Positions 14,852 through 64,000 of a stretch of DNA of 64,000 bases are shown here, in pieces. This stretch comes from Vitrella brassicaformis CCMP3155. Its lineage: Eukaryota; Protista; Chromerida. The notes under the pieces were generated by a model. It ran no database searches. It was not told the DNA's origin and saw only the letters and a program-made list of their open reading frames with translations. A program made the position numbers and the translations under genes. Location of the stretch: NCBI GenBank assembly GCA_001179505.1, contig CDMY01000304.1, forward strand, positions 62,001 to 126,000. Direction: 5' to 3'. The first letter of the stretch is position 1. Each line of letters opens with the position of its first letter.

Positions 14852-15151
14852 NNNNNNNNNNNNNNNNNNNNNNNNNNNNNNNNNNNNNNNNNNNNNNNNN
14901 NNNNNNNNNNNNNNNNNNNNNNNNNNNNNNNNNNNNNNNNNNNNNNNNNNNNNNNNNNNNNNNNNNNNNNNNNNNNNNNNNNNNNNNNNNNNNNNNNNNN
15001 NNNNNNNNNNNNNNNNNNNNNNNNNNNNNNNNNNNNNNNNNNNNNNNNNNNNNNNNNNNNNNNNNNNNNNNNNNNNNNNNNNNNNNNNNNNNNNNNNNNN
15101 NNNNNNNNNNNNNNNNNNNNNNNNNNNNNNNNNNNNNNNNNNNNNNNNNNN
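14852..15151. other. Assembly gap (300 N)
   Basis: Run of N. Confidence 1.
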
Positions 15152-31800: not shown

Positions 31801-34491
31801 GTATGACATCCGCGATTGCGCGTTGGACGTCACAGAGGCAGACATAGGCCAGGCCGCCACCGACACATCGAGGCCAATACGCACCATCCACCCGTCCATT
31901 CGAAGACTTGTCGCTGCGCACGACCCGAAAACTTTCGTAAGCGCCATTTTAGACGTGCATCCTCGCCACAAAGTGTTCCTGGGCACTTGCGCCGTGCGTG
32001 CAGGTGGACGTGTCGTCGGACGAGCTGCTGATGGAGGCAGAGCGCATCTACGCGCACAAGACGGAGATGGAGGCCAACCAGCCCACCCGGCCGCGCAGCT
32101 CCCTCTACGACTTCTGCCTTTACCACTACACACAGCAAATGGGCCTCATCTCACTGGCAGAAAAACGGGTGCCGATCCGTCTACACATATAAGGGGCGAG
32201 ACACATAGCCACTGCGCTGTGTGGGCAGGTGTACGCCTTGCTGGCAGCCCTCGACCGCAAGATGACTCGGGCGGGGGGATCTGCTGCGAAAATGTCGATA
32301 CCTCTGAGGCTCTTCGCTGGGTGACTCACCCCTCCCACCCAAACACCCACACACGGTTGCACATATGCGCAAACGGCTCCCTTCACTCCATGTCTCGCTA
32401 TCGACAGCTTCTTGGAGTTCGCCGACACGTCCTTCGTCTACCCCTTGCCAGTGCTCAACATCTTTCTCCACTTGAAGCGCCAAATCCACAGCCTCGTCGA
32501 CTCCCCGCCCGTCGGCGGCCCTCTCGTCCTCACCCCACACACAGCCGCGGCTAATGTGGGGCTCATCGACGCCGTGCAGGCCTACAAAATGGCCTGCTTC
32601 TCACTGCAGGTAACTAAATGAAAGGGCAACGGAAATCACAAGCCTCCTTTTCGTGTGTGCTGTCCGTTTGTGTACGTGTATGGGTGTGGGGAATAAATAG
32701 GGCATTTCGGCGCCAGGATTTGAGCGGCTGGTCACCGCAATTGCTGCCGGGTGCACTGTGGAGGTGCCCGCCAAAAACGGATCGTCGGGCTTCACAAAAG
32801 TGGACATCTCACTTGCGAGACGTAAGGTGATCATGCTGGCCAAGCTGGTGCGCACCACACTGACCTCTGGGCTGCCCGCCAACCCCAATGCTTCCGGCAA
32901 CGGCACGCTCATGCGGACGATCCTGACGCGGCTGGAGATGTACCGTGATCAGGGCGGGGAGGCGTCGGGACCAAAAATCGACCACCAGCAATTCAAAGAG
33001 GCAAGTAAAGTCAGAGAGCCGCTTTTCTCTTCTGACGTGTGTGTGTATGTGTGTGTGTGCAGGGTTTGCTATCATGTGGCGTCATGGCCGAGGAGCCGAC
33101 GTGGGCAGATGAGCTGGATCAGCAGCAGAGGGGCTTCATCGACCCCACCACCACACTGCAGTACTTCACCGCACAGCCGCACCAGCATCCGACAAGAATC
33201 GATGCGGTGCGGCTGTCCGTCGACGAGTATTCCCTCCTAGATGCCGCCGTGTCGGCCTTCATGACCGACTTCCGGTATGTGAGAAAACTACCNNNNNNNN
33301 NNNNNNNNNNNNNNNNNNNNNNNNNNNNNNNNNNNNNNNNNNNNNNNNNNNNNNNNNNNNNNNNNNNNNNNNNNNNNNNNNNNNNNNNNNNNNNNNNNNN
33401 NNNNNNNNNNNNNNNNNNNNNNNNNNNNNNNNNNNNNNNNNNNNNNNNNNNNNNNNNNNNNNNNNNNNNNNNNNNNNNNNNNNNNNNNNNNNNNNNNNNN
33501 NNNNNNNNNNNNNNNNNNNNNNNNNNNNNNNNNNNNNNNNNNNNNNNNNNNNNNNNNNNNNNNNNNNNNNNNNNNNNNNNNNNNNNNNNNNNCCCCCCCC
33601 CACACACACGACACACATCATTCTCTTTGCGTGTGGGTATGTATGGGGCTGCGCGAACAGTGCCGCCATGACCTCAGCCTTGACCATCTTCCGTCAGCTG
33701 CGGGAGGCACCCCCAGAACCACCACCGGCTGCCACCGATGGCCAGCAGAAGCAAGCCAAAGCGACAAAGGATGAAGACTCAGAAAGCTCCGAAGAAGAGC
33801 AGCCAGTACCGGCTGTGGAACAGCCGCAGAATAAGCTTCCCGCGCGGCAGCCTTCTGCCTTTATGCTTCGGGATGGGGAGGATGTGTGGAAATGGGAGGA
33901 CATGAGGAGGCTCATACACTCGGTGGCGCCACAGGCAAACCCAAATAGATAGACAAACAGACAGACGTGAGCCACCGGTACTTGAGTGTCCGTCTCGGTG
34001 TGCCCCACTGTGTGTGATGTGAAGGTGAGTGAGTCTGAGTCGTGGCGGTTCTACCGCGCCTGCGTCGACCTCTCACACGCATGCACCAAGGTAAGCTGTA
34101 GTAGGCCGATGGACGCACACAGGCATCCCCCCTGTGTCTGTGTCTTGCCCATATCGGTGACTCAGCGTCCTCTGTCAATGTGCCATTTCGAGCCTCACGT
34201 CGACGAGTTGCCCTCACACGGAGGCGACAGCATCCCAGAGCACGTCTTCATGCTGGCGTCTCTCCGCGAAATGCTCTTCTACGGCACCGAGACGGCCGCA
34301 GAGGGAACGCCACAGGCGGGCAGATGGACACAGCCTTCACCGCCGAACACCGCACCTTCCGGACGGGTAAGCTCAGATGATGCATGGGAGCAGACAGCGC
34401 CCGCCCAAGACTTAATTTTCTTTGTTTGGCTGTCTGCGTGCAGAGTGAGGTGCGGAGAGCGGCGGCCAAGAAGGGCGACAAGAAAAAGTGA
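28885..34491 (+). CDS. Large multi-exon protein, Pro-rich N-terminus and central coiled coil; weak resemblance to TSNAXIP1-like ciliary proteins; spans the gap at 33293-33592
   Basis: Splice-consistent exons, e.g. QEYISQLERIIDRVKDHH...LDEMTAAHDALR|RELDETVKRAKETEMALEEKVEDL and SLYDFCLYHYTQQMGLISLAEK|VYALLAALD; last exon SEVRRAAAKKGDKKK* ends at 34491. Continuity across the gap is assumed; the family call is from memory only. Confidence 0.6.
33293..33592. other. Assembly gap (300 N)
   Basis: Run of N. Confidence 1.
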
Positions 34492-50950: not shown

Positions 50951-53769
50951 ATGGCGGCGAGCAGTGCTGCTGGTAATGACGGCCCGGAGGAGAAGACGAA
51001 AGAGGACTTCCACCACCTCTTCACCTTCACAAGCAGTCATAAAGCCGGTACGGTGTGTGAATGCATGCAAGATCCGCCTCACTGCAATTGCTGCTGTGTG
51101 CGTGGGATCCATCAGGGATGGACAAGGTGGACCGGGAGAAGGCCAACCAGATCATCTATGAGATGTCCAAGGACAGCAGCTACTTCAAGAATGAGCAGCG
51201 CAAGGCCGCAGAAGTGGACAAGCAGATCACAGAGATGCTGGCGAAAGCAGACGCATATCGGTCGGTATCAGGGCAGACAGACAGGGGAGGGGAGGGGAGG
51301 GGAGGCTGGTATGCAATCTGTGCACGTGTGTACGCTGCGCGTGTGTGCTGGATGGTCAGGAACTCGCCGCCCGAGATGCGCCTGAAGGCCGAGCAGTCGG
51401 TGCGTGGGGTGCTGCAGCGTCTGGAGAAGGAGAGGGAGAGCAAGAGGGGCTCATGGTGGTGCCACGTAGACATGGACATGTTCTACTGCGCCGGTACGTA
51501 CGTCAAAACACACAGCACGACACACACATCACATCGTCACCTCTGTGTGTCGTCCTGGTTCCCTCAGTCGAGATCCGCGACAACCCATCTCTCAAGGACA
51601 AGCCCGTGGCTGTGGGCGCCGGACCCCGCTGCACTCTCTGCACCGCCAACTACATCGCGCGCTCGTACGGTGTGCGCAATGCCATGCCCGGCTTCATCGC
51701 GCAGAAGCTCTGCTCAGATAAGGGCGCTACTCTCGTCTTCGTCCCGTAAGGAGTACACACAACGACACACACACACACACACACACACAGGCAGGCAGGC
51801 AGGCAGTGTGCTTGCATTTCATTCGTTTCCCTGCTTGTGGCTGTGTTGTTCAGGCCTAGAATGAACAAATACGCCGAGGAGTCGAAGGTTGTGCGTGAGG
51901 TATGGATGTTGACACACACATGGTGGTAGTCTGTGTGTGTGTGTATGTATTGTTCTCGTGTGTGCAGGTGTTGTCAGAGTTTGATCCTCACCTGAAGATG
52001 GGCTCGCTCGACGAGGCCGTCCTCAACCTCACTGACTACCTCAAGTAACCCATCGCCCTCATACGGAGATGGATGCTCGTTTTTCTGTGCTGATTGGTCG
52101 TCTCTGCAGGAAGAATGGTCTGGACAGTCACGAGGGCAGAGTGCAGATCGCCACACAGATACGTCAGAGGTAGGTGACGCTCCGCCCACCAAATCGTGCG
52201 GACTGCCGTCGATGAATGTGTGTGTGTGTGTGTGTGTCGTCTGTAATCATCAGGATAGCTGAGCGCACTGGAGGTCTGACGGCGAGCGCAGGCATCGCTC
52301 CCGGCCGCATGATTGCGAAGATCGCATCCGACATGAACAAACCCAATGGTACGCACCACAATACACCGAGTGGGTCCCCAATGGGCTGCTGCTGGCACTC
52401 CCTTTGTCACGTGCTCACCGATTAGGTCAGACGATCGTCGAGGAGCGTGATGCAGTGGGCTTCACGGACAACCTGAGCGTGCGCAAGATACCCGGGGTGG
52501 GCAAGGTAAGTACGTCAGCCGTCCGCTGTCTGCCCCGCCAAACACTGGGTGGATCCATCCGAGCGTCCTTTTGTTTCTGTGTGTGTGTTGTGCTTGCAGG
52601 TGGGTGAGCGCAAGCTGGAGGCGCTCAACATCAAGACCTGCCGCGACATCCTCGACAACGCCGTTCTCATCACACAGGTGTGTAGGCGAATCGTGGATGC
52701 GTCCATCTGTCCATCTTTTCCACGTGTGCGGTGTGGTGGGTGTCAGCTGTTCACCGACCCCTTCAGGCATCTGCTGCTGCGTGCGGCCATGGGTGTCGAC
52801 GGCGAGCTCAAGGAGCAGGAGCGTAAGTCGTTCTGCTGCGAGCACACCTTTGACGCGACCGACGACCGCACGAAGCTCGAGAAAGTGCTCAGGAACATCG
52901 CTGCGGCACTCGCAAGTAGGCGACCCATCACCACTATTTGTTGTCACGGATGGACTCGTTGCTGTCGTGTCCTTGCATGCGTCAGAGGATCTGAAGTCGG
53001 ATCGCATGAAGAGCAGACACGTCACCATCAAAGTCAAGACGGCCGACTTCAAGGTTCGCAGAATCGACAACACACCAGAACCTGTCATCAGCAACACTCC
53101 GTTCCTGTCCCTCTCCATGCGGCTGTATGTCAGGAGCGGAGTGTCGCGATGCAGCTCTCGCGCAACACCGACGAGACCGACGACATCGCCGCTGGCGCGC
53201 GCAAGGCCCTCAACAAATACATCGACACACACGGCCTCCCCCGCATCCCGCAGCTGGGCATCAAGTGTGCCGGTCTGAGCCGCGTCATTGGTGCACACGG
53301 AGAGGCAGCGCCTAAGGGCACCATCGACTACCTCCTGCAGCAGCACAAGCACAAGAGGGGCAAGGGCAATGACAAAGAGGGAACGGTCGCCGAGATCGAG
53401 GATGAGCAGATGCAGCCGGAGGACGAACAGATGGACATCGAGATAGCCCACTGTGAGCGACACGCGGACCCGCTGCCCGATGTCATCGACTTAGACGAGT
53501 ACGAGGAGCACCCCCACAGCAACCCGCTGCCGCCGTCATCCTCGTTCAGCAGCCGCCCTGCCGCCCCTCTCCCCCAGAAGCGATCGCGGCCCTCAACCGC
53601 TGCACAGCCCAAACCATCGGTCAAGAAGGGCAAGAGGAACAGCGTGCAGCCGGTGTCGGGGCCGATGGACGCGCTGCTCAAGAGGATGGCTGACAAGAAG
53701 GCGGGCGGGGGCGATGGGGGTGGTGGGAGCAGCGCGGCGGGTAAGGGCGATTGGATTGAGCTGGACTGA
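50951..53769 (+). CDS. POLK: DNA polymerase kappa (Y-family, DinB/IMS)
   Basis: Pol-kappa N-clasp (KA|[30 protein letters not shown]), [10 protein letters not shown]|[37 protein letters not shown], catalytic [28 protein letters not shown]|[10 protein letters not shown] and little-finger [12 protein letters not shown]. Stop ends at 53769. Confidence 0.95.
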
Positions 53770-55433: not shown

Positions 55434-55733
55434 NNNNNNNNNNNNNNNNNNNNNNNNNNNNNNNNNNNNNNNNNNNNNNNNNNNNNNNNNNNNNNNNNNN
55501 NNNNNNNNNNNNNNNNNNNNNNNNNNNNNNNNNNNNNNNNNNNNNNNNNNNNNNNNNNNNNNNNNNNNNNNNNNNNNNNNNNNNNNNNNNNNNNNNNNNN
55601 NNNNNNNNNNNNNNNNNNNNNNNNNNNNNNNNNNNNNNNNNNNNNNNNNNNNNNNNNNNNNNNNNNNNNNNNNNNNNNNNNNNNNNNNNNNNNNNNNNNN
55701 NNNNNNNNNNNNNNNNNNNNNNNNNNNNNNNNN
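55434..55733. other. Assembly gap (300 N)
   Basis: Run of N. Confidence 1.
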
Positions 55734-57016
55734 CCCCCCCCCCCCCCCCCCGCAACACATACACACACGCGTGACTTTTCCGTGCTTACGTTCATCAGAC
55801 ATGCAATCAAAAAGCTGCGCATGGATCGGACTGCACGCGTGTATCTTAAAAACTGCTGATGACTGACTGTAGTCAGCAGGAGATCAATGTACGACAGCCC
55901 CCAAGTGACCTCTGACCTCATCACTTGCGTCGAGTCACACACTCTTGCAAGTCAGAGTCACATAGCGACGCGCGTGGATGCGATGATACCGACATGAGCA
56001 CTCAAACATCACCGATCACTGACTGTGTACACACACGCTCACACATACAAACAGAAAGTTAAAAAGATGCCCGTGTGTATCGTGCACGCACGTGCGTGTT
56101 GGTGTGAACGGACCGGTCAATCAGGCCAAGCAGTTGTCGGCCGTAGGTACGTATGAACATCGATCGACGCGCCACATACATATACACATAACGCGGACGT
56201 ACTCGTACACGGGCAAAACGACGCAACGCGCACACGCACATACCCTCTCTCTGTGACTAACAGGCATACCACCTAGCTAGCCAATTGCCAAAAGGAAATG
56301 GATGACGACATTCACAAAACCACAGCACGACTGCCAACGGGCGCTTGCGAGTCAGTGATGGGCAACAAGCGGCCTTCGTTGAGCCCCTTCCGGCCGTACG
56401 TATCACTACTGTTACATGCCACGCATATACATTTTCACACACACGGAACCAGCCCGCCGACCCACAGCCAGCGCTCATACACACACTCACAAACCCACAC
56501 ACCCTTCCCCCCCACCCCCTACACGTGCACACACACACACAGCCTCACGACCACTCACTCACACACGACGGCATTATCACGGCACACACGGTCGAATTGC
56601 AGGGAAACCTCCCCGGCCCTCTCATTGGCATGCCTACGTACGCCAACTGCAGCTAGGGACGCACTTGCGCACCCCAGCTTTCGCTCGGCAGCCAGTCACA
56701 CTATCAATCCAACGAGCCAGTAATACGAATAACGCACATACTTCCCTCCACGGCAGAACACACACGCTAGTAGATGCACTCACTCAGACAGACGGATAAA
56801 GAGACAGACAGACAGACAGATGGACGGACAGACAGACAGACAGACGGAGAGACAGACAGACACGCTGCCGGCCGGCCGTGTTGCATGCGAAGCCCAGCCC
56901 TAGCTGGGGCCGGCAATCGACAGTCTCAAAGTAGACGAAGAAAAAGAAAAGGATCCGAGCGCTTGGTTGTCTAAGCCAGAGCGATGATTGGCCGATACAT
57001 GCATCAAGTGGGCGGC

Positions 57017-60000
57017 TCATAGGACCTCGATCCCCGCAGAAAGGGGTGCGCACTTCGGGTACCCCGCAAGTACCTGAAAGGTGCAGGACACATGTGCATT
57101 CCACTCTTGTTCACAGCCACGTGTGTCATGCGCGTGTTGGCTGACCCATTGACATTTCAATTCGCCCACGCACGACCACTGCATACAAACAAGGCAGCAC
57201 GGGAGATGGCACACCGACCGACGTGGATGGATGGAGGCATCTAGTGACGGTACCTTGACTCTGTAGCGTGCGATTGATCTGGAGGACACCCCTACAATGG
57301 CCCTGGTCCCGTTGGCGCGGTCATTCCCCTCCACGCACTTGTCCGTCTGTCCAGTGCTGCATGTACACACCAACAGACACACAGAAACGTAGACACAGAC
57401 GCACACAACCACAAGGGCTACGTGTATATCCATGAGCAAAGCAGTGTGCATCAGCAAGCCATTTCTATGTCACTCACGAGGTCACGTTGCATGCTTCAAG
57501 AGTCATCCTCTGTGGTGACTGCAGGCGCCACACGCTTCCGTTGCTCTCGCGCGTGTTGGTCCACATATCCATCTCATAGCCGCTGCCAGGCGCCAACTCC
57601 TCATCCCTAATGATGTCCGAGAAGAATGCTGCATCCACCCAAACAACATACAACATTACAAATGTACACACGGGCGTCTGTTGTGGCTCGAGTACGTACC
57701 AGGACATCCAGTCTTGTTGAAGTCTGCAGCCGTGTCATTCGTAGCCGTGTCGTTTCCCCATGAGATCCAGGAGAGATCGCGGGTCACGCCAGCCACCACA
57801 CTGCCCTTGAAATCGAACTTCTTCAGCACAGACAGCAAGGCGTAAGAGCGATTCTCGCGCTCGGGGCCTTGTGGGGGCGTGCCGTTGAAAGTGGCGTTGG
57901 CCGTCCTGTTACTCGACCGGCCTGCATGCCACGCGCAAAACAAGGCAGCCACACACACCATACAGGCACCAGGGAATGAATGAGACACACGGATCTCGTC
58001 AGTGTGACCTGTCATTTTCATTACCTGACGGGCGGGCAGAGCCGCGAAGATTCCCCTCGCCCGACAGGGTTGGGGTGCGGGGAGGAATGGGCCCGCACTT
58101 GGCGAAGCCGGTCACTCTCTGAATGCCCCACACACACATGTTACATACATTACGTGGATGTGTAGAGCCTCTCTTCTCCGGTGCCACGTGTGAATCCGTC
58201 CACTCACCCAATCGCAGTCGATATCGCCCGGCATACACAACCACTGCAAATGTGTGTGTGTATGTGTGTTTTTTTAAGACAAAGCATGCATACATTCCGT
58301 GGCCGATGGATGGGCGGGGTGGGGTTGGGTAGCGTCTGGCTATACCTGGATTCTGTATTGCGGCATTGCTCTGGGCGACACGGCGATAAATACGTTCGTA
58401 CCAAGTTGCAAGGTATCGGTTCCATTGACGACAGTATCACTGGCACCTGCCGCAATGCCAGAAGCCTTCACACATTTGCCGTTCGTTCCATTGCTGCCAC
58501 AGACACATGTCCAGATGTAGACAAAGCGCTTGCGTAAGAGTTCATTTGTGCGTCCACATCCCTCGCTGGCTAAGGCATTGCTTACGAAAGCACTGGACAC
58601 GCTCGAAAGGTCATGTTCTGCTCAGACTGCAGGTTCCAGATGGTGCCGTTGCCATTGGCGATGCTGCTGTTGGCCCACACGTCCACCTCATAGCCGTCGC
58701 CGTTGAGTGCCAGCCCTCTGTTGTAGCTGACGTCAGAGAAGACGGCTGCACTCATTCATTCAGCCAAGAAAGACACACAAGGACACAAGAGATTCTATCA
58801 GCGGCAACACATGCAGACACGTGTGTGGTGTCCTTCCTGTTGCGCCGTGTATACGTACTGGGGCACCCGAGTTGCTGGCGCTGTCCGCTTGGTCTAGTTT
58901 CCCATCGGATCCACGCATTACCTCGGGCAACCCCTGGTGATGGCAGGACAGCAGGCATAGAAATCACTCACATACCCCCTCAGGCACAAGCATACCTGCC
59001 TCCAGGCCTTCAGACCCCTGTGCCTCCAGTGCGGAAACCAGCAAGGCTGAGCTATTCTGTCGCAAGGGGCCCTCTCGTGGCATTCCAGTCCTGTTCGTCC
59101 GCGCAGTCCTGTTCGTGGGGCCCTCTCGTGGCATTCCAGTCCTGTTCGTCTGCGCAGTCCTGTTCGTCCGCGAACCTACCACATGCAACACAAATCGAAC
59201 GAACACACACCACATCAGAAAAGTGCATCCAGCAGGAGTTTATGTTTGTCCCATCACTTATACACACCTGGCGGGGGGCGTCTCCGTGGCGGGGGTCGTC
59301 TCCCTGGCGGACAGCTTGCGGCTGACACGCAGCACGTCACACAGCCTCCAGTTTGCGGGAAGAATCCACCTTGCGGGAAATAGCATTTGGGGGGGTAATA
59401 GCCGGTTCTCTTGCAGCTTCCACGCGACCCACCACAATACCCAGATGGCGGGAAGTATGGATTCACTGGGTACGGGCGCCCCGGCCTCCAACGACCTGAA
59501 CCCAAGCCGCCTACAGGGAATCCGCTCGCCTGCAGGTTGATGTAGTTGTTTCTCTCGATGCTGATGAACTGCTGGATGAGCTGGATCGCTGCCTGGACAA
59601 GCGTCGGTGTCCCCGCCGGCGAGTCATTGTCGTCAGCACTGCCCTCGCCGTCATCACTGTTGTCCTCTGCTTCAGCGGTGGGCGTAGGCGTCTCACTGCC
59701 CTCGCCGTCATCACTGTTGTCCTCTGCTTCAGCGGTGGGCGTAGGCGTCCCACTGCCCTCGCCGTCAGCACTGCTGCCCTCGCCCTCAGCGGGTGTGGGC
59801 GTCCCACTGCCCTCGCCGTCATCACTGCTGCCCTCGCCCTCAGCGGGCGTGGGCGTCCCACTGCCCTCGCCGTCAGGAACGGCCGGCTGGTCAGGACTGC
59901 CCTCGCCATCAGCGGCGCATACGGCGTTTGTGTTGCAGACCAATCCCTCGCAGCAACCAGAACCCTGGCTGCATGGAGCCCCCACACCAGCACAATCAGA

Positions 60001-61881
60001 TGGCGACTGAGCGCCGTCTCCACCGCCCGTCCCCCCTGTGGTCGTGGAGGCAGAATCGTCACCGCCGTCAGCATCGTCCTGCTGCTCGCTCGATGTACTG
60101 CTCTCCTCAGACTGCTCCCCCTGCTGCCCGCTCTCGGCAGGTTGCTCCTCAGACGAGCCATCTTCCGTTGCCGTTTCCGCTGACGTTGAGTCTGGCTGTT
60201 CGGCTACGTCTGGGTCTTCTTCGTTTGGCCCTGTCAGATAAGCGCCCGACGGCTCCTCCTCTTCATTGGGCGGGGTCTCGGGCTCCCCGTCAGGACTGAC
60301 CGCTTGGTCAGCACTGCCCTCGCCCGCAGGGTCGGGTTCTGCTGGGCCTGGCTGTCCCACTTGGTACTGATCCCAGCCAACCTCGCCCGATGCCTCGCTA
60401 TCAGCTGGCTGGTTCTGCTCCTCAGGCGAGCCGTCATCTTGCGGTGATGTGTCTGCAGGGGGCTGTCCCTCTGGCGGCCCACCAACCCAGCCGGCGTCAC
60501 TGGGTGGCTCTTCAGGCTCGACAGGGGATGGCTGGTCTGCGGGAGGCGCGACCTCCGGTTGCTGTGTGTCTTGGGGCTGGTCTGCGGGAGGCGCCTCAGC
60601 CCAGCCATCACTGCCATCGTCAGGCACGGTCTCTGGCGGCTGCTCTGGGTCTTCTGGCGGGCCTTCGGGAGGCGCGTCTGGTGGCGCGTCTGGTGGCAGG
60701 CCTTCGGGAGGCGCGTCTTGTGGCGGGGCTTCAGGAGGCGCCTCTGGCGACTGCTCTGGGTCTTGTGGCGGGCCTTCGGGAGGCGCGTCTGGTGGCGCGT
60801 CTGGTGGCAGGCCTTCGGGAGGCGCGTCTTGTGGCGGGCCTTCAGGAGGCGCCTCAGCCCAGCCATCATTGCCGTCGTCAGGCACGGTCTCTGGCGGCTG
60901 CTCTGGGTCTTGTGGCGGGCCTTCGGGAGGCGCGTCTGGTGGCGCGTCTGGTGGCAGGCCTTCGGGAGGCGCGTCTTGTGGCGGGCCTTCAGGAGGCGCC
61001 TCAGCCCAGCCATCATTGCCGTCGTCAGGCACGGTCTCTGGCGGCTGCTCTGGGTCTTGTGGCGGGCCTTCGGGAGGCGCGTCTGGTGGCGCGTCTGGTG
61101 GCAGGCCTTCGGGAGGCGCGTCTTGTGGCGGGCCTTCAGGAGGCGCCTCAGCCCAGCCATCATTGCCGTCGTCAGGCACGGTCTCTGGCGGCNNNNNNNN
61201 NNNNNNNNNNNNNNNNNNNNNNNNNNNNNNNNNNNNNNNNNNNNNNNNNNNNNNNNNNNNNNNNNNNNNNNNNNNNNNNNNNNNNNNNNNNNNNNNNNNN
61301 NNNNNNNNNNNNNNNNNNNNNNNNNNNNNNNNNNNNNNNNNNNNNNNNNNNNNNNNNNNNNNNNNNNNNNNNNNNNNNNNNNNNNNNNNNNNNNNNNNNN
61401 NNNNNNNNNNNNNNNNNNNNNNNNNNNNNNNNNNNNNNNNNNNNNNNNNNNNNNNNNNNNNNNNNNNNNNNNNNNNNNNNNNNNNNNNNNNNACGGGTGG
61501 CGGCTCTTGAGGCATCGGCTCCACGGGTGGCGGCTCTTGAGGCATCGGCTCGACGGGTGCCGGCTCTTGAGGCATTGGTTCGGGATACGGATCCATCGGA
61601 GCCGGCTGCGGTTCCGGCAGATACGTTGGATAAAGAAATTGCTCAGGGGCAGGTCCCTGCGGGCCGTAAGCATCCGGGGGAGGTCCCTGAGGGAAGTCAC
61701 CACCCGGACTTCCCATGGAGTCCTGGATAACGCACAACACAACACAATACATGCAGGTGTGTCGACTGGCGCCCATCATTCATTCCGATCTTACCTCGGA
61801 GAACGACTCCCCAAGCTGCGCTGCCGCCATGGGGAGCAGGGCAGCGCAGACTGACGCGACAGTCAGCCATAGCTTCCTCAT
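57017..61881 (-). CDS. Large modular secreted glycoprotein (signal peptide, Pro/acidic repeats, knottin-like motif, NxT-rich repeats, duplicated Cys/Trp domain); candidate cell/cyst-wall protein
   Basis: MRKLWLTVASVCAALLPMAAAQLGESFSE|gtaag joins the long 59.26-61.72 kb exon. The apparent stop at 59254 lies in a phase-1 intron (CCA G|gtgtgt...gtggtag|GT TCG). About ten further exons splice with consistent phases down to ...CAPLSAGIEVL* at 57017. Confidence 0.78.
60590..61192 (-). repeat. Coding tandem repeat, 147-bp (49-aa) unit, three near-identical copies plus variant copies, running into a gap
   Basis: TTCAGGAGGCGCCTCAGCCCAGCCATCATTGCCGTCGTCAGGCACGG at 60841, 60988 and 61135 (period 147); unit PPETVPDDGNDGWAEAPPEGPPQDAPPEGLPPDAPPDAPPEGPPQDPEQ. 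Confidence 0.95.
61193..61492. other. Assembly gap (300 N) within the coding repeat array
   Basis: Run of N flanked by different repeat types on each side. Confidence 1.
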
Positions 61882-63768: not shown

Positions 63769-63961
63769 TCACTTGTAATACTCCTTCATCTCCCGTTCGT
63801 AACGCTCCTGATGTGATCCCCTAGTGCACGTGTGACATCAGGTTTTGGTGTGCGCGTGTGAGTGAGTGTCTGACCTTGTCTCTCTTGGCCTGGGTCTCGT
63901 ACGGCTTCTTCTGCCTGGCCGACATGCTCTTCCACTCGGCGCCCAATATCTTGGACACCTC
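63769..63961 (-). CDS. HMG-box protein, last two exons (5' part beyond the window)
   Basis: Exon 63875-63961 EVSKILGAEWKSMSARQKKPYETQAKRDK and exon 63769-63807 ERYEREMKEYYK* form HMG-box helices 2-3; GT-AG boundaries in phase 0. Confidence 0.9.
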
Positions 63962-64000
63962 CTGATTGATAAATGAGTGCATCGAGTGATTCGTTCAGTG

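Follow-up and report, generated by a model that had tools for sequence, protein, structure and literature searches.

Positions 57017-61881 of a 64,000-nucleotide (nt) window from Vitrella brassicaformis CCMP3155 (the window being the whole stretch of contig CDMY01000304.1 analysed here) hold, on the minus strand, a gene of this alveolate, an alga of coral reefs; the gene is a nuclear locus with short introns. The deduced sequence supports a product that would be secreted, modular, heavily glycosylatable and previously undescribed. According to a single-gene model, this product probably comprises at least 1,166 residues plus whatever is encoded within an assembly gap, and it would enter the secretory pathway by means of the signal peptide encoded by exon 1. 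All the sequence features listed in a preliminary description of this DNA were located on the minus strand: (i) the signal peptide; (ii) the repeats; (iii) the linker; (iv) the six-Cys motif; (v) the helix; (vi) the Tyr/Cys block; (vii) the TNRT repeats; and (viii) the pair of C-terminal domains.

The model contains 13 exons in 14 pieces (exon 2 is split by the gap) and, with the gap excluded, it keeps the frame over 1,167 codons including the stop. Exons were placed by peptide, their flanks were then read, and phases were tabulated over all junctions. All the internal exons are flanked by AG on the 5' side and GT on the 3' side, the phases close to the TGA at 57017-57019, and the introns (62-121 nt, GT..AG) have a GC content of 0.43-0.57. 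As a yardstick, the annotated protein of the neighbouring DNA polymerase kappa (PolK) gene was mapped onto the window: this gene (50951-53769, plus strand, 620 aa) has 13 exons, and its 12 GT..AG introns measure 65-108 nt. The same 127,974-nt scaffold is recorded as carrying another PolK-like protein (679 aa, with 40% identity to the query), whose own locus falls outside the window. The coding reading of the minus-strand exons is supported because the GC content at third codon positions (GC3) is raised in frame (0.79 in exon 1; 0.69 in the domain exons, from their pooled in-frame blocks, with 0.76-0.79 in the core exons; 0.80 in the PolK coding sequence) as compared with the introns (about 0.5), and because exon 2 after the gap is a long stop-free stretch of 641 codons, non-repetitive over 60579-59269. 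The claim of one giant protein hidden as separate open reading frames (ORFs) stands insofar as the exon model keeps the frame and has GT/AG ends; the join over 59254 and the continuity across the gap are what we infer.

Upstream of the gap, the leader encoded by exon 1 reads directly as a basic n-region, a hydrophobic core of 13 residues and A-A-A preceding Q. The start of the mechanical ORF (two ATG, 61779-61774) falls inside intron 1. The Cys/Val-rich 'leader' of that ORF translates a TG-rich intron tract (61723-61779), and the real leader is that of exon 1.

Table 1. Features of the minus-strand locus, with positions in the window.
Feature	Positions	Strand	Remarks
Exon 1, start codon and signal peptide	61795-61881	-	29 codons; GT donor at 61794; phase 0
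Intron 1	61723-61794	-	72 nt; GTAAGA..CCAG; in-frame splice to 61722
Exon 2, part before the gap	61493-61722	-	29 Pro in 76 residues; ends in 10-aa PMPQEPPPVE-type repeat meeting the gap
Assembly gap	61193-61492	none	300-N placeholder; real length, frame and content not given by the assembly
Exon 2, 49-aa acidic Pro/Asp/Glu repeats	60580-61192	-	37% Pro, 27% Asp+Glu
Exon 2, acidic Pro/Ser/Gln/Glu linker	60007-60579	-	Non-repetitive; isoelectric point (pI) about 4
Exon 2, six-Cys knottin-like module	59896-60006	-	C-6-C-5-CC-4-C-5-C
Exon 2, GEGSGTPTPA-type acidic Thr/Pro repeats	59637-59875	-	57-nt repeat x4.3, 92% identity (TRF)
Exon 2, predicted amphipathic helix	59542-59631	-	AlphaFold2, residues 137-160 of 247-aa piece; predicted local distance difference test (pLDDT) 66-73
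Exon 2, basic Gly/Tyr/Pro/Cys block	59268-59541	-	91 residues; pI 10.1; 7 Cys, 6 Tyr, 0 acidic
Candidate intron 2	59176-59267	-	92 nt; GC 0.43 (lowest of the locus); holds TGA 59254-59256
Exon 3, TNRT sequon repeats and start of domain copy 1	58996-59175	-	5 N-x-S/T; 51-nt repeat x2.0 (TRF); z = 9.2 against start of exon 9
Exon 4, copy 1, W-I-R-W motif and Cys 1	58859-58933	-	AG/GT flanks; z = 3.3 against copy 2
Exon 5, copy 1 core, two Trp and Cys 2	58586-58745	-	49% identical to exon 10; z = 21; GC3 0.79
Exon 6, copy 1, Cys 3	58346-58493	-	z = 8.7 against exon 11
Exon 7, 12-codon mini-exon W-x-C-x6-C-x-W, Cys 4 and 5	58208-58243	-	z = 5.1 against exon 12; AG/GT flanks
Exon 8, last part of copy 1 with Cys 6, then linker to copy 2	58025-58118	-	Ends in phase 1; z = 4.7
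Exon 9, start of copy 2, 7 sequons, W-I-S-W, Cys 1	57700-57921	-	Phase-1 acceptor homologous to 59176
Exon 10, copy 2 core	57478-57628	-	Similar to exon 5
Exon 11, copy 2, Cys 3	57254-57356	-	Similar to exon 6
Exon 12, 11-codon mini-exon W-x-C-x5-C-x-W	57146-57178	-	Similar to exon 7
Exon 13 (14th piece), last part of copy 2 with Cys 6; stop TGA 57017-57019	57017-57073	-	Similar to exon 8; phase table

Exon 2 is a succession of blocks of very different composition. Before the gap, TRF finds a 30-nt (10-aa) repeat in 2.8 copies with 96% identity (61493-61575) and, abutting the other side of the gap, a 147-nt (49-aa) repeat in 3.1 copies with 99% identity (60742-61192). The 49-aa array consists of three near-identical units, one unit without the Trp segment and one variant unit, with its Trp at residues 13, 62, 111 and 197 of the post-gap piece; this piece as a whole has a pI of about 4, 138 Pro and 138 Asp+Glu. 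Within exon 2 there is a charge switch, as about 550 residues of pI about 4 (59542-61192) are followed by the 91 basic residues of 59268-59541. This acidic-then-basic pattern could drive self-association, and the GEGSGTPTPA repeats are possible sites of mucin-type O-glycosylation. Over the last 247 residues of exon 2, the AlphaFold2 prediction reaches some confidence only for the knottin-like module and one helix; the GEGSGTPTPA repeats and the Tyr/Cys block (pLDDT <40 for the latter) are predicted to be disordered. The Tyr/Cys block, for which the genome search returned no paralogue, ends in an RRPPP repeat followed by the candidate donor G/GTGTGT. Exon 2 contains no R-x-L site, and proteolytic processing sites were not seen in it.

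The six-Cys module has its Cys at positions 400, 407, 413, 414, 419 and 425 of the post-gap piece, a spacing which fits the knottin pattern C-x(3-7)-C-x(3-8)-CC-x(2-6)-C-x(n)-C. It scores 18.2 bits against Pfam Toxin_12 (E 0.004), under the cut-off of 21, and every match in a search of PDB sequences is a cystine-knot peptide (E 0.45-6). Folded alone by AlphaFold2 from the single sequence, the module reaches a pLDDT of 77; in Foldseek, nearly all of its top 50 matches are knottins, with template modelling (TM) scores of 0.6-0.75, probability <=0.99 and, for such a short module, E >=0.1. A knottin-like fold is likely from these predictions, beneath formal thresholds, and there is no reason to read it as a toxin.

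Downstream of the candidate intron 2, two copies of a Cys/Trp domain lie in tandem, copy 1 spanning exons 3-8 and copy 2 spanning exons 9-13; they are alike exon by exon (z values against shuffles in Table 1), and they have intron positions and phases in common, save for one extra intron in copy 1. Kept in both copies are (i) the six Cys; (ii) W-x-x-W (58902-58913 in copy 1 and 57758-57769 in copy 2, minus strand); (iii) two further Trp; and (iv) the mini-exon W-x-C-x(5-6)-C-x-W. Both units start in phase 1, and unit 1 also ends in phase 1. Symmetric 1-1 modules are typical for shuffled extracellular domains, and the two copies may be regarded as shufflable modules because phase-1 introns bound them. 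N-glycosylation sequons (N-x-S/T) amount to 20 in the 412 residues of this downstream part vs 1 in the 717 residues of exon 2.

The W-x-x-W motif is the consensus for Trp C-mannosylation, known from the thrombospondin repeats of apicomplexan adhesins; apart from W-x-x-W, nothing else in the domain is like a thrombospondin repeat. A Ricin-B-type beta-trefoil, prompted by G-x-x-x-D-x-W ... W-x-L-Q in the core exon, was not supported: no internal threefold repeat was found (z <=2.7 between exons of one copy), nor any match in Pfam or PDB.

All searches for relatives were carried out exon by exon (34-73 residues for the domain exons), and their negative results exclude close relatives only. None of the seven domain exons searched matches a Pfam family at E <=1, and no usable match to the domain exons came from PDB sequences or the ESM Atlas. 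With a profile built from the two core exons, JGI metagenomes gave 163 pattern matches, none of which was confirmed; against 1.84 billion protein representatives, the same profile matched only two bacterial proteins. These two were rejected as a motif coincidence, caused by a short repeated G-D-G-x-x-x-D-V-W strand which, in one of them, lies within repeats after Kelch-like units. In the Vitrella genome itself, no paralogue of any part was found and the only copies of the core exon are the two described here; a match of the knottin-region query to contig C353 (50776-53910, E 0.012) is Gly-rich low-complexity sequence in a 373-codon open frame and not a paralogue. For the C-terminal third of exon 2, a word-index protein search (candidates of 452-1438 and 138-439 aa) found no protein, from Vitrella or elsewhere, and its lists were filled by low-complexity words. 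At this exon-level sensitivity, the Cys/Trp domain appears to be one that the collections do not recognise.

Elsewhere in the window, an HMG-box-like ORF fragment lies at 63821-63982 (minus strand). Downstream of the gene, an AC/GT-rich low-complexity tract (56000-56900), open in several frames with Thr-His runs, looks non-coding and is followed by another 300-N gap.

Taken together, the best overall explanation of the locus is one gene for a secreted modular glycoprotein, likely with a role in a matrix or wall, and we give this combined reading an even chance of being right. The points that weigh against it concern the frame across the gap, the stop at 59254, the absence of the gene from the predicted proteome and the lack of known wall motifs; each of them is considered below.

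As to the gap, the four N-runs of the window (14852-15151, 33293-33592, 55434-55733 and 61193-61492) are all exactly 300 long, and the genome paper gives 931,689 N for 4177 contigs in 1064 scaffolds, that is, about 299 N per join (PMC4501334). Since these two figures agree, the gap lengths are to be regarded as placeholders, and the 841-codon ORF runs in frame through the gap only because 300 is a multiple of 3. Any ORF read across such a gap is in frame by construction. In consequence, the sequence does not fix the reading frame across the gap. The gap could then conceal a scaffolding error, an intron or the limit between two genes, which would separate exon 1 and the 10-aa repeats from everything from the 49-aa repeats onward: the placeholder length would allow it, either side of the gap is open in two of its three minus-strand frames, and no other contig of this assembly bridges the gap or holds the flanking repeats. 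Nevertheless, such a break is quite improbable, as the gap cuts the 30-nt array at its upper edge and the 147-nt array at its lower edge, and the failure of a short-read assembly is accounted for by the extension of both tandem arrays into it. Besides, both sides have the same strand and the same Pro/Glu/Gln-rich composition, and the 641 post-gap residues contain no Met, so that the post-gap piece seems to lack a start codon of its own. For these reasons, the two sides very probably belong to one continuous gene.

The second point is the stop at 59254. The candidate intron 2 that contains it begins with ccag/GTGTGTAT and ends with GTGGTAG/gt; its donor is near-identical to acag/GTGTGTAG, which is found among the PolK donors, and a TAG acceptor also occurs once in PolK. 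Its AG at 59176 matches exactly the position of the phase-1 acceptor of copy 2, for which the expectation is 1 in 16 if unconstrained, and the homology between copies 1 and 2 begins with the first codon past that AG. The distance from the stop to exon 3 is also short, just 78 nt. The intronic nature of this stop, put forward in the preliminary description, fits the intron-like ends and the AG at the homologous acceptor, as a model and not as an observation. It is probable, from these signals, that the stop is intronic and that one gene extends across it.

The competing possibility is that of two neighbouring genes with a common orientation. The upstream one would end at TGA 59254-59256; the downstream one would start at ATG 59215 and encode the sequon repeats and the pair of Cys/Trp domains, and nothing else. 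The long ORF does truly terminate at this stop, and ATG 59215, which shares the frame of exon 3 and precedes a run of about 13 residues that are for the most part hydrophobic, might be the start of a separate downstream gene. Two arguments for the join were also abandoned: (i) phase compatibility is uninformative, as GGTGTGT holds GT donors in all three phases; and (ii) shared descent of introns 2 and 8 was not found, since their MAFFT alignment is suggestive and yet the local score is that of GT-repeat background, reached by 426 of 2000 shuffles. In any case, two genes are unlikely here, because only about 40 nt would have to accommodate the 3' end of one gene together with the 5' end and promoter of its neighbour, and because the hydrophobic run after ATG 59215 is broken by Arg and His and makes a poor signal peptide, although the domains carry many sequons and conserved Cys. 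The domain part would need a signal peptide on account of its 20 sequons in 412 residues and six conserved Cys per copy, and only exon 1 offers a good one. Against two separate genes stand also the AG placed exactly at the acceptor position of the duplicate copy and the 92-nt stretch itself, whose ends are intron-like and whose GC is lower than anywhere else in the locus. A single gene read through the probably intronic stop is retained in what follows.

Regarding its annotation, the gene appears to be missing from public protein sets: the Vitrella proteome is present in the searched collections, and the core exon occurs in none of their representatives, whatever the length. As this proteome was predicted with RNA-seq hints (PMC4501334), the absence could reflect low or no expression in culture. 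A silent or decaying pseudogene, omitted from the annotation for not being expressed, would be in line with exons that occur in no protein of the collections despite the Vitrella proteome being there. It is, nonetheless, very improbable, considering that all the exons are open, the 12 splice-site pairs (12/12) are intact, the six Cys and the Trp are kept between copies that are just 49% identical, and GC3 is raised in frame. A failed gene prediction is sufficiently explained by the gap and the low-complexity repeats; these two, along with the absence of any in-frame Met from the post-gap piece, are the likely reasons why the gene is missing.

From N- to C-terminus, the single-gene product would present the following parts: (i) a long acidic Pro-rich stretch of 10-aa and 49-aa repeats, probably extended and unfolded; (ii) a small disulfide-knotted, knottin-like module; (iii) acidic Thr/Pro repeats, possibly carrying O-glycans; (iv) a single amphipathic helix; (v) a basic block of Gly, Tyr, Pro and Cys in which the number of Cys is odd; (vi) a linker rich in N-glycan sites; and (vii) two tandem domains of about 160-190 residues, each with six conserved Cys and with conserved Trp. 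The extended charged part might act as a spacer and, through its acidic rod and basic Tyr/Cys block, as a charge-patterned assembly element, and the two folded C-terminal domains could serve as anchors to a wall polymer or to other proteins. By analogy, its most likely role would be that of an extracellular matrix or wall glycoprotein.

The term 'wall scaffold', when applied to this protein, is meant to express a likeness of architecture and not membership of a family. In the 641 post-gap residues, the hallmarks of extensins are missing, both the Ser-Pro(3-5) glycomodules (SPP, SPPP and SPPPP = 0) and the Tyr-x-Tyr cross-link motif (0). The preliminary description had proposed an undescribed structural wall glycoprotein: an undescribed secreted modular glycoprotein is in agreement with exons found in no searched protein, and the membership of a wall-protein family has to be given up in view of the missing motifs. 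The same single gene might instead encode a soluble or surface adhesin or lectin-like glycoprotein for cell-cell, cell-substrate or cell-bacteria contacts, whose Pro-rich stalk would hold out two binding domains. Two folded Cys/Trp domains placed distally on a long unfolded stalk, the missing extensin cross-link motifs and a single-copy gene, vs the families of known wall-protein sets, would suit an adhesin; on the other hand, no lectin or adhesin family was recognised in Pfam, PDB or the Atlas, no threefold internal repeat was found, and the last exon, read directly, has no membrane anchor. On balance, an adhesin is a tentative and rather doubtful possibility, which suits the same set of parts as the scaffold does. 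A bolder version of the matrix or wall role is that the six-Cys/Trp module of about 160-190 residues (five or six exons, phase-1 bounded, with W-x-x-W) would be a new extracellular fold exclusive to Vitrella, and the protein a principal scaffold of the laminated wall of vegetative cells or sporangia. This we consider unlikely; if true, it would offer a first molecular entry point to how walls are built in the free-living organisms most closely related to the apicomplexans.

What cyst and oocyst walls are to apicomplexans, walls and sporangia are to the free-living chromerids, and the protein components of the latter are not known to have been described. The value of this locus is limited in that relatives were undetected and the role is an inferred one. 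Still, a single-copy secreted protein from outside the gene set would be a concrete candidate for wall studies, and its case indicates that the public Vitrella gene set omits genes at repeat-induced gaps.

Several known systems can be compared with the proposed protein. Inhibitor cystine knot peptides have the same Cys spacing as the six-Cys module, whose fold, as predicted, can be superposed on knottins of the spider, squash and cyclotide kinds; but while these peptides have about 35 residues and are released, the Vitrella module sits inside a protein of >1,100 residues. Plant extensins and Pro-rich wall proteins are alike in having a signal peptide, repetitive Pro-rich sequence and Tyr segments open to cross-linking. 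Unlike extensins, which are basic, the Vitrella protein is strongly acidic save for the last 91 residues of exon 2. Among coccidians, the oocyst wall is built from Tyr-rich precursors such as Eimeria GAM56 and GAM82 and the Toxoplasma Tyr-rich proteins, and the Tyr block of the Vitrella protein would likewise be open to oxidative cross-linking, although it has just 6 Tyr in one 91-residue block and no homology with these precursors was found.

Within the alveolates, CST1 of the Toxoplasma gondii cyst wall combines Cys-containing domains with a large Thr/Pro mucin region, the glycosylation of which gives the wall its rigidity (PMC3873430, PMC5225312). The Vitrella protein would resemble CST1 in being a secreted protein of an alveolate whose Cys-containing folded domains are joined to a Thr/Pro mucin-like region; it differs in that no SRS domain or sequence similarity to CST1 was found, in having about four short Thr/Pro units and in that its low-complexity part consists mostly of Pro/Asp/Glu and not of Thr.

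By layout, CST1 is one of the nearest analogues, together with the hydroxyproline-rich glycoproteins of algae and, among those of the volvocine algae, above all the pherophorins, which have a Pro-rich rod and globular domains and in Volvox build an insoluble extracellular matrix by self-assembly and cross-linking (PMC9818292). Like them, the Vitrella protein would be a secreted glycoprotein with a long Pro-rich rod of variable repeat number plus globular domains (PMC9818292). At exon-by-exon sensitivity, the seven domain exons have no Pfam match to the Pherophorin domain. The rod also differs, being acidic (Pro-Glu/Asp) and without Ser-Pro runs, and the two lineages, an alveolate and a green alga, are not related. 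Finally, pherophorins are arranged as a dumbbell, globular-rod-globular (PMC9818292), whereas in the Vitrella protein both folded copies would lie C-terminal of the Pro-rich part.

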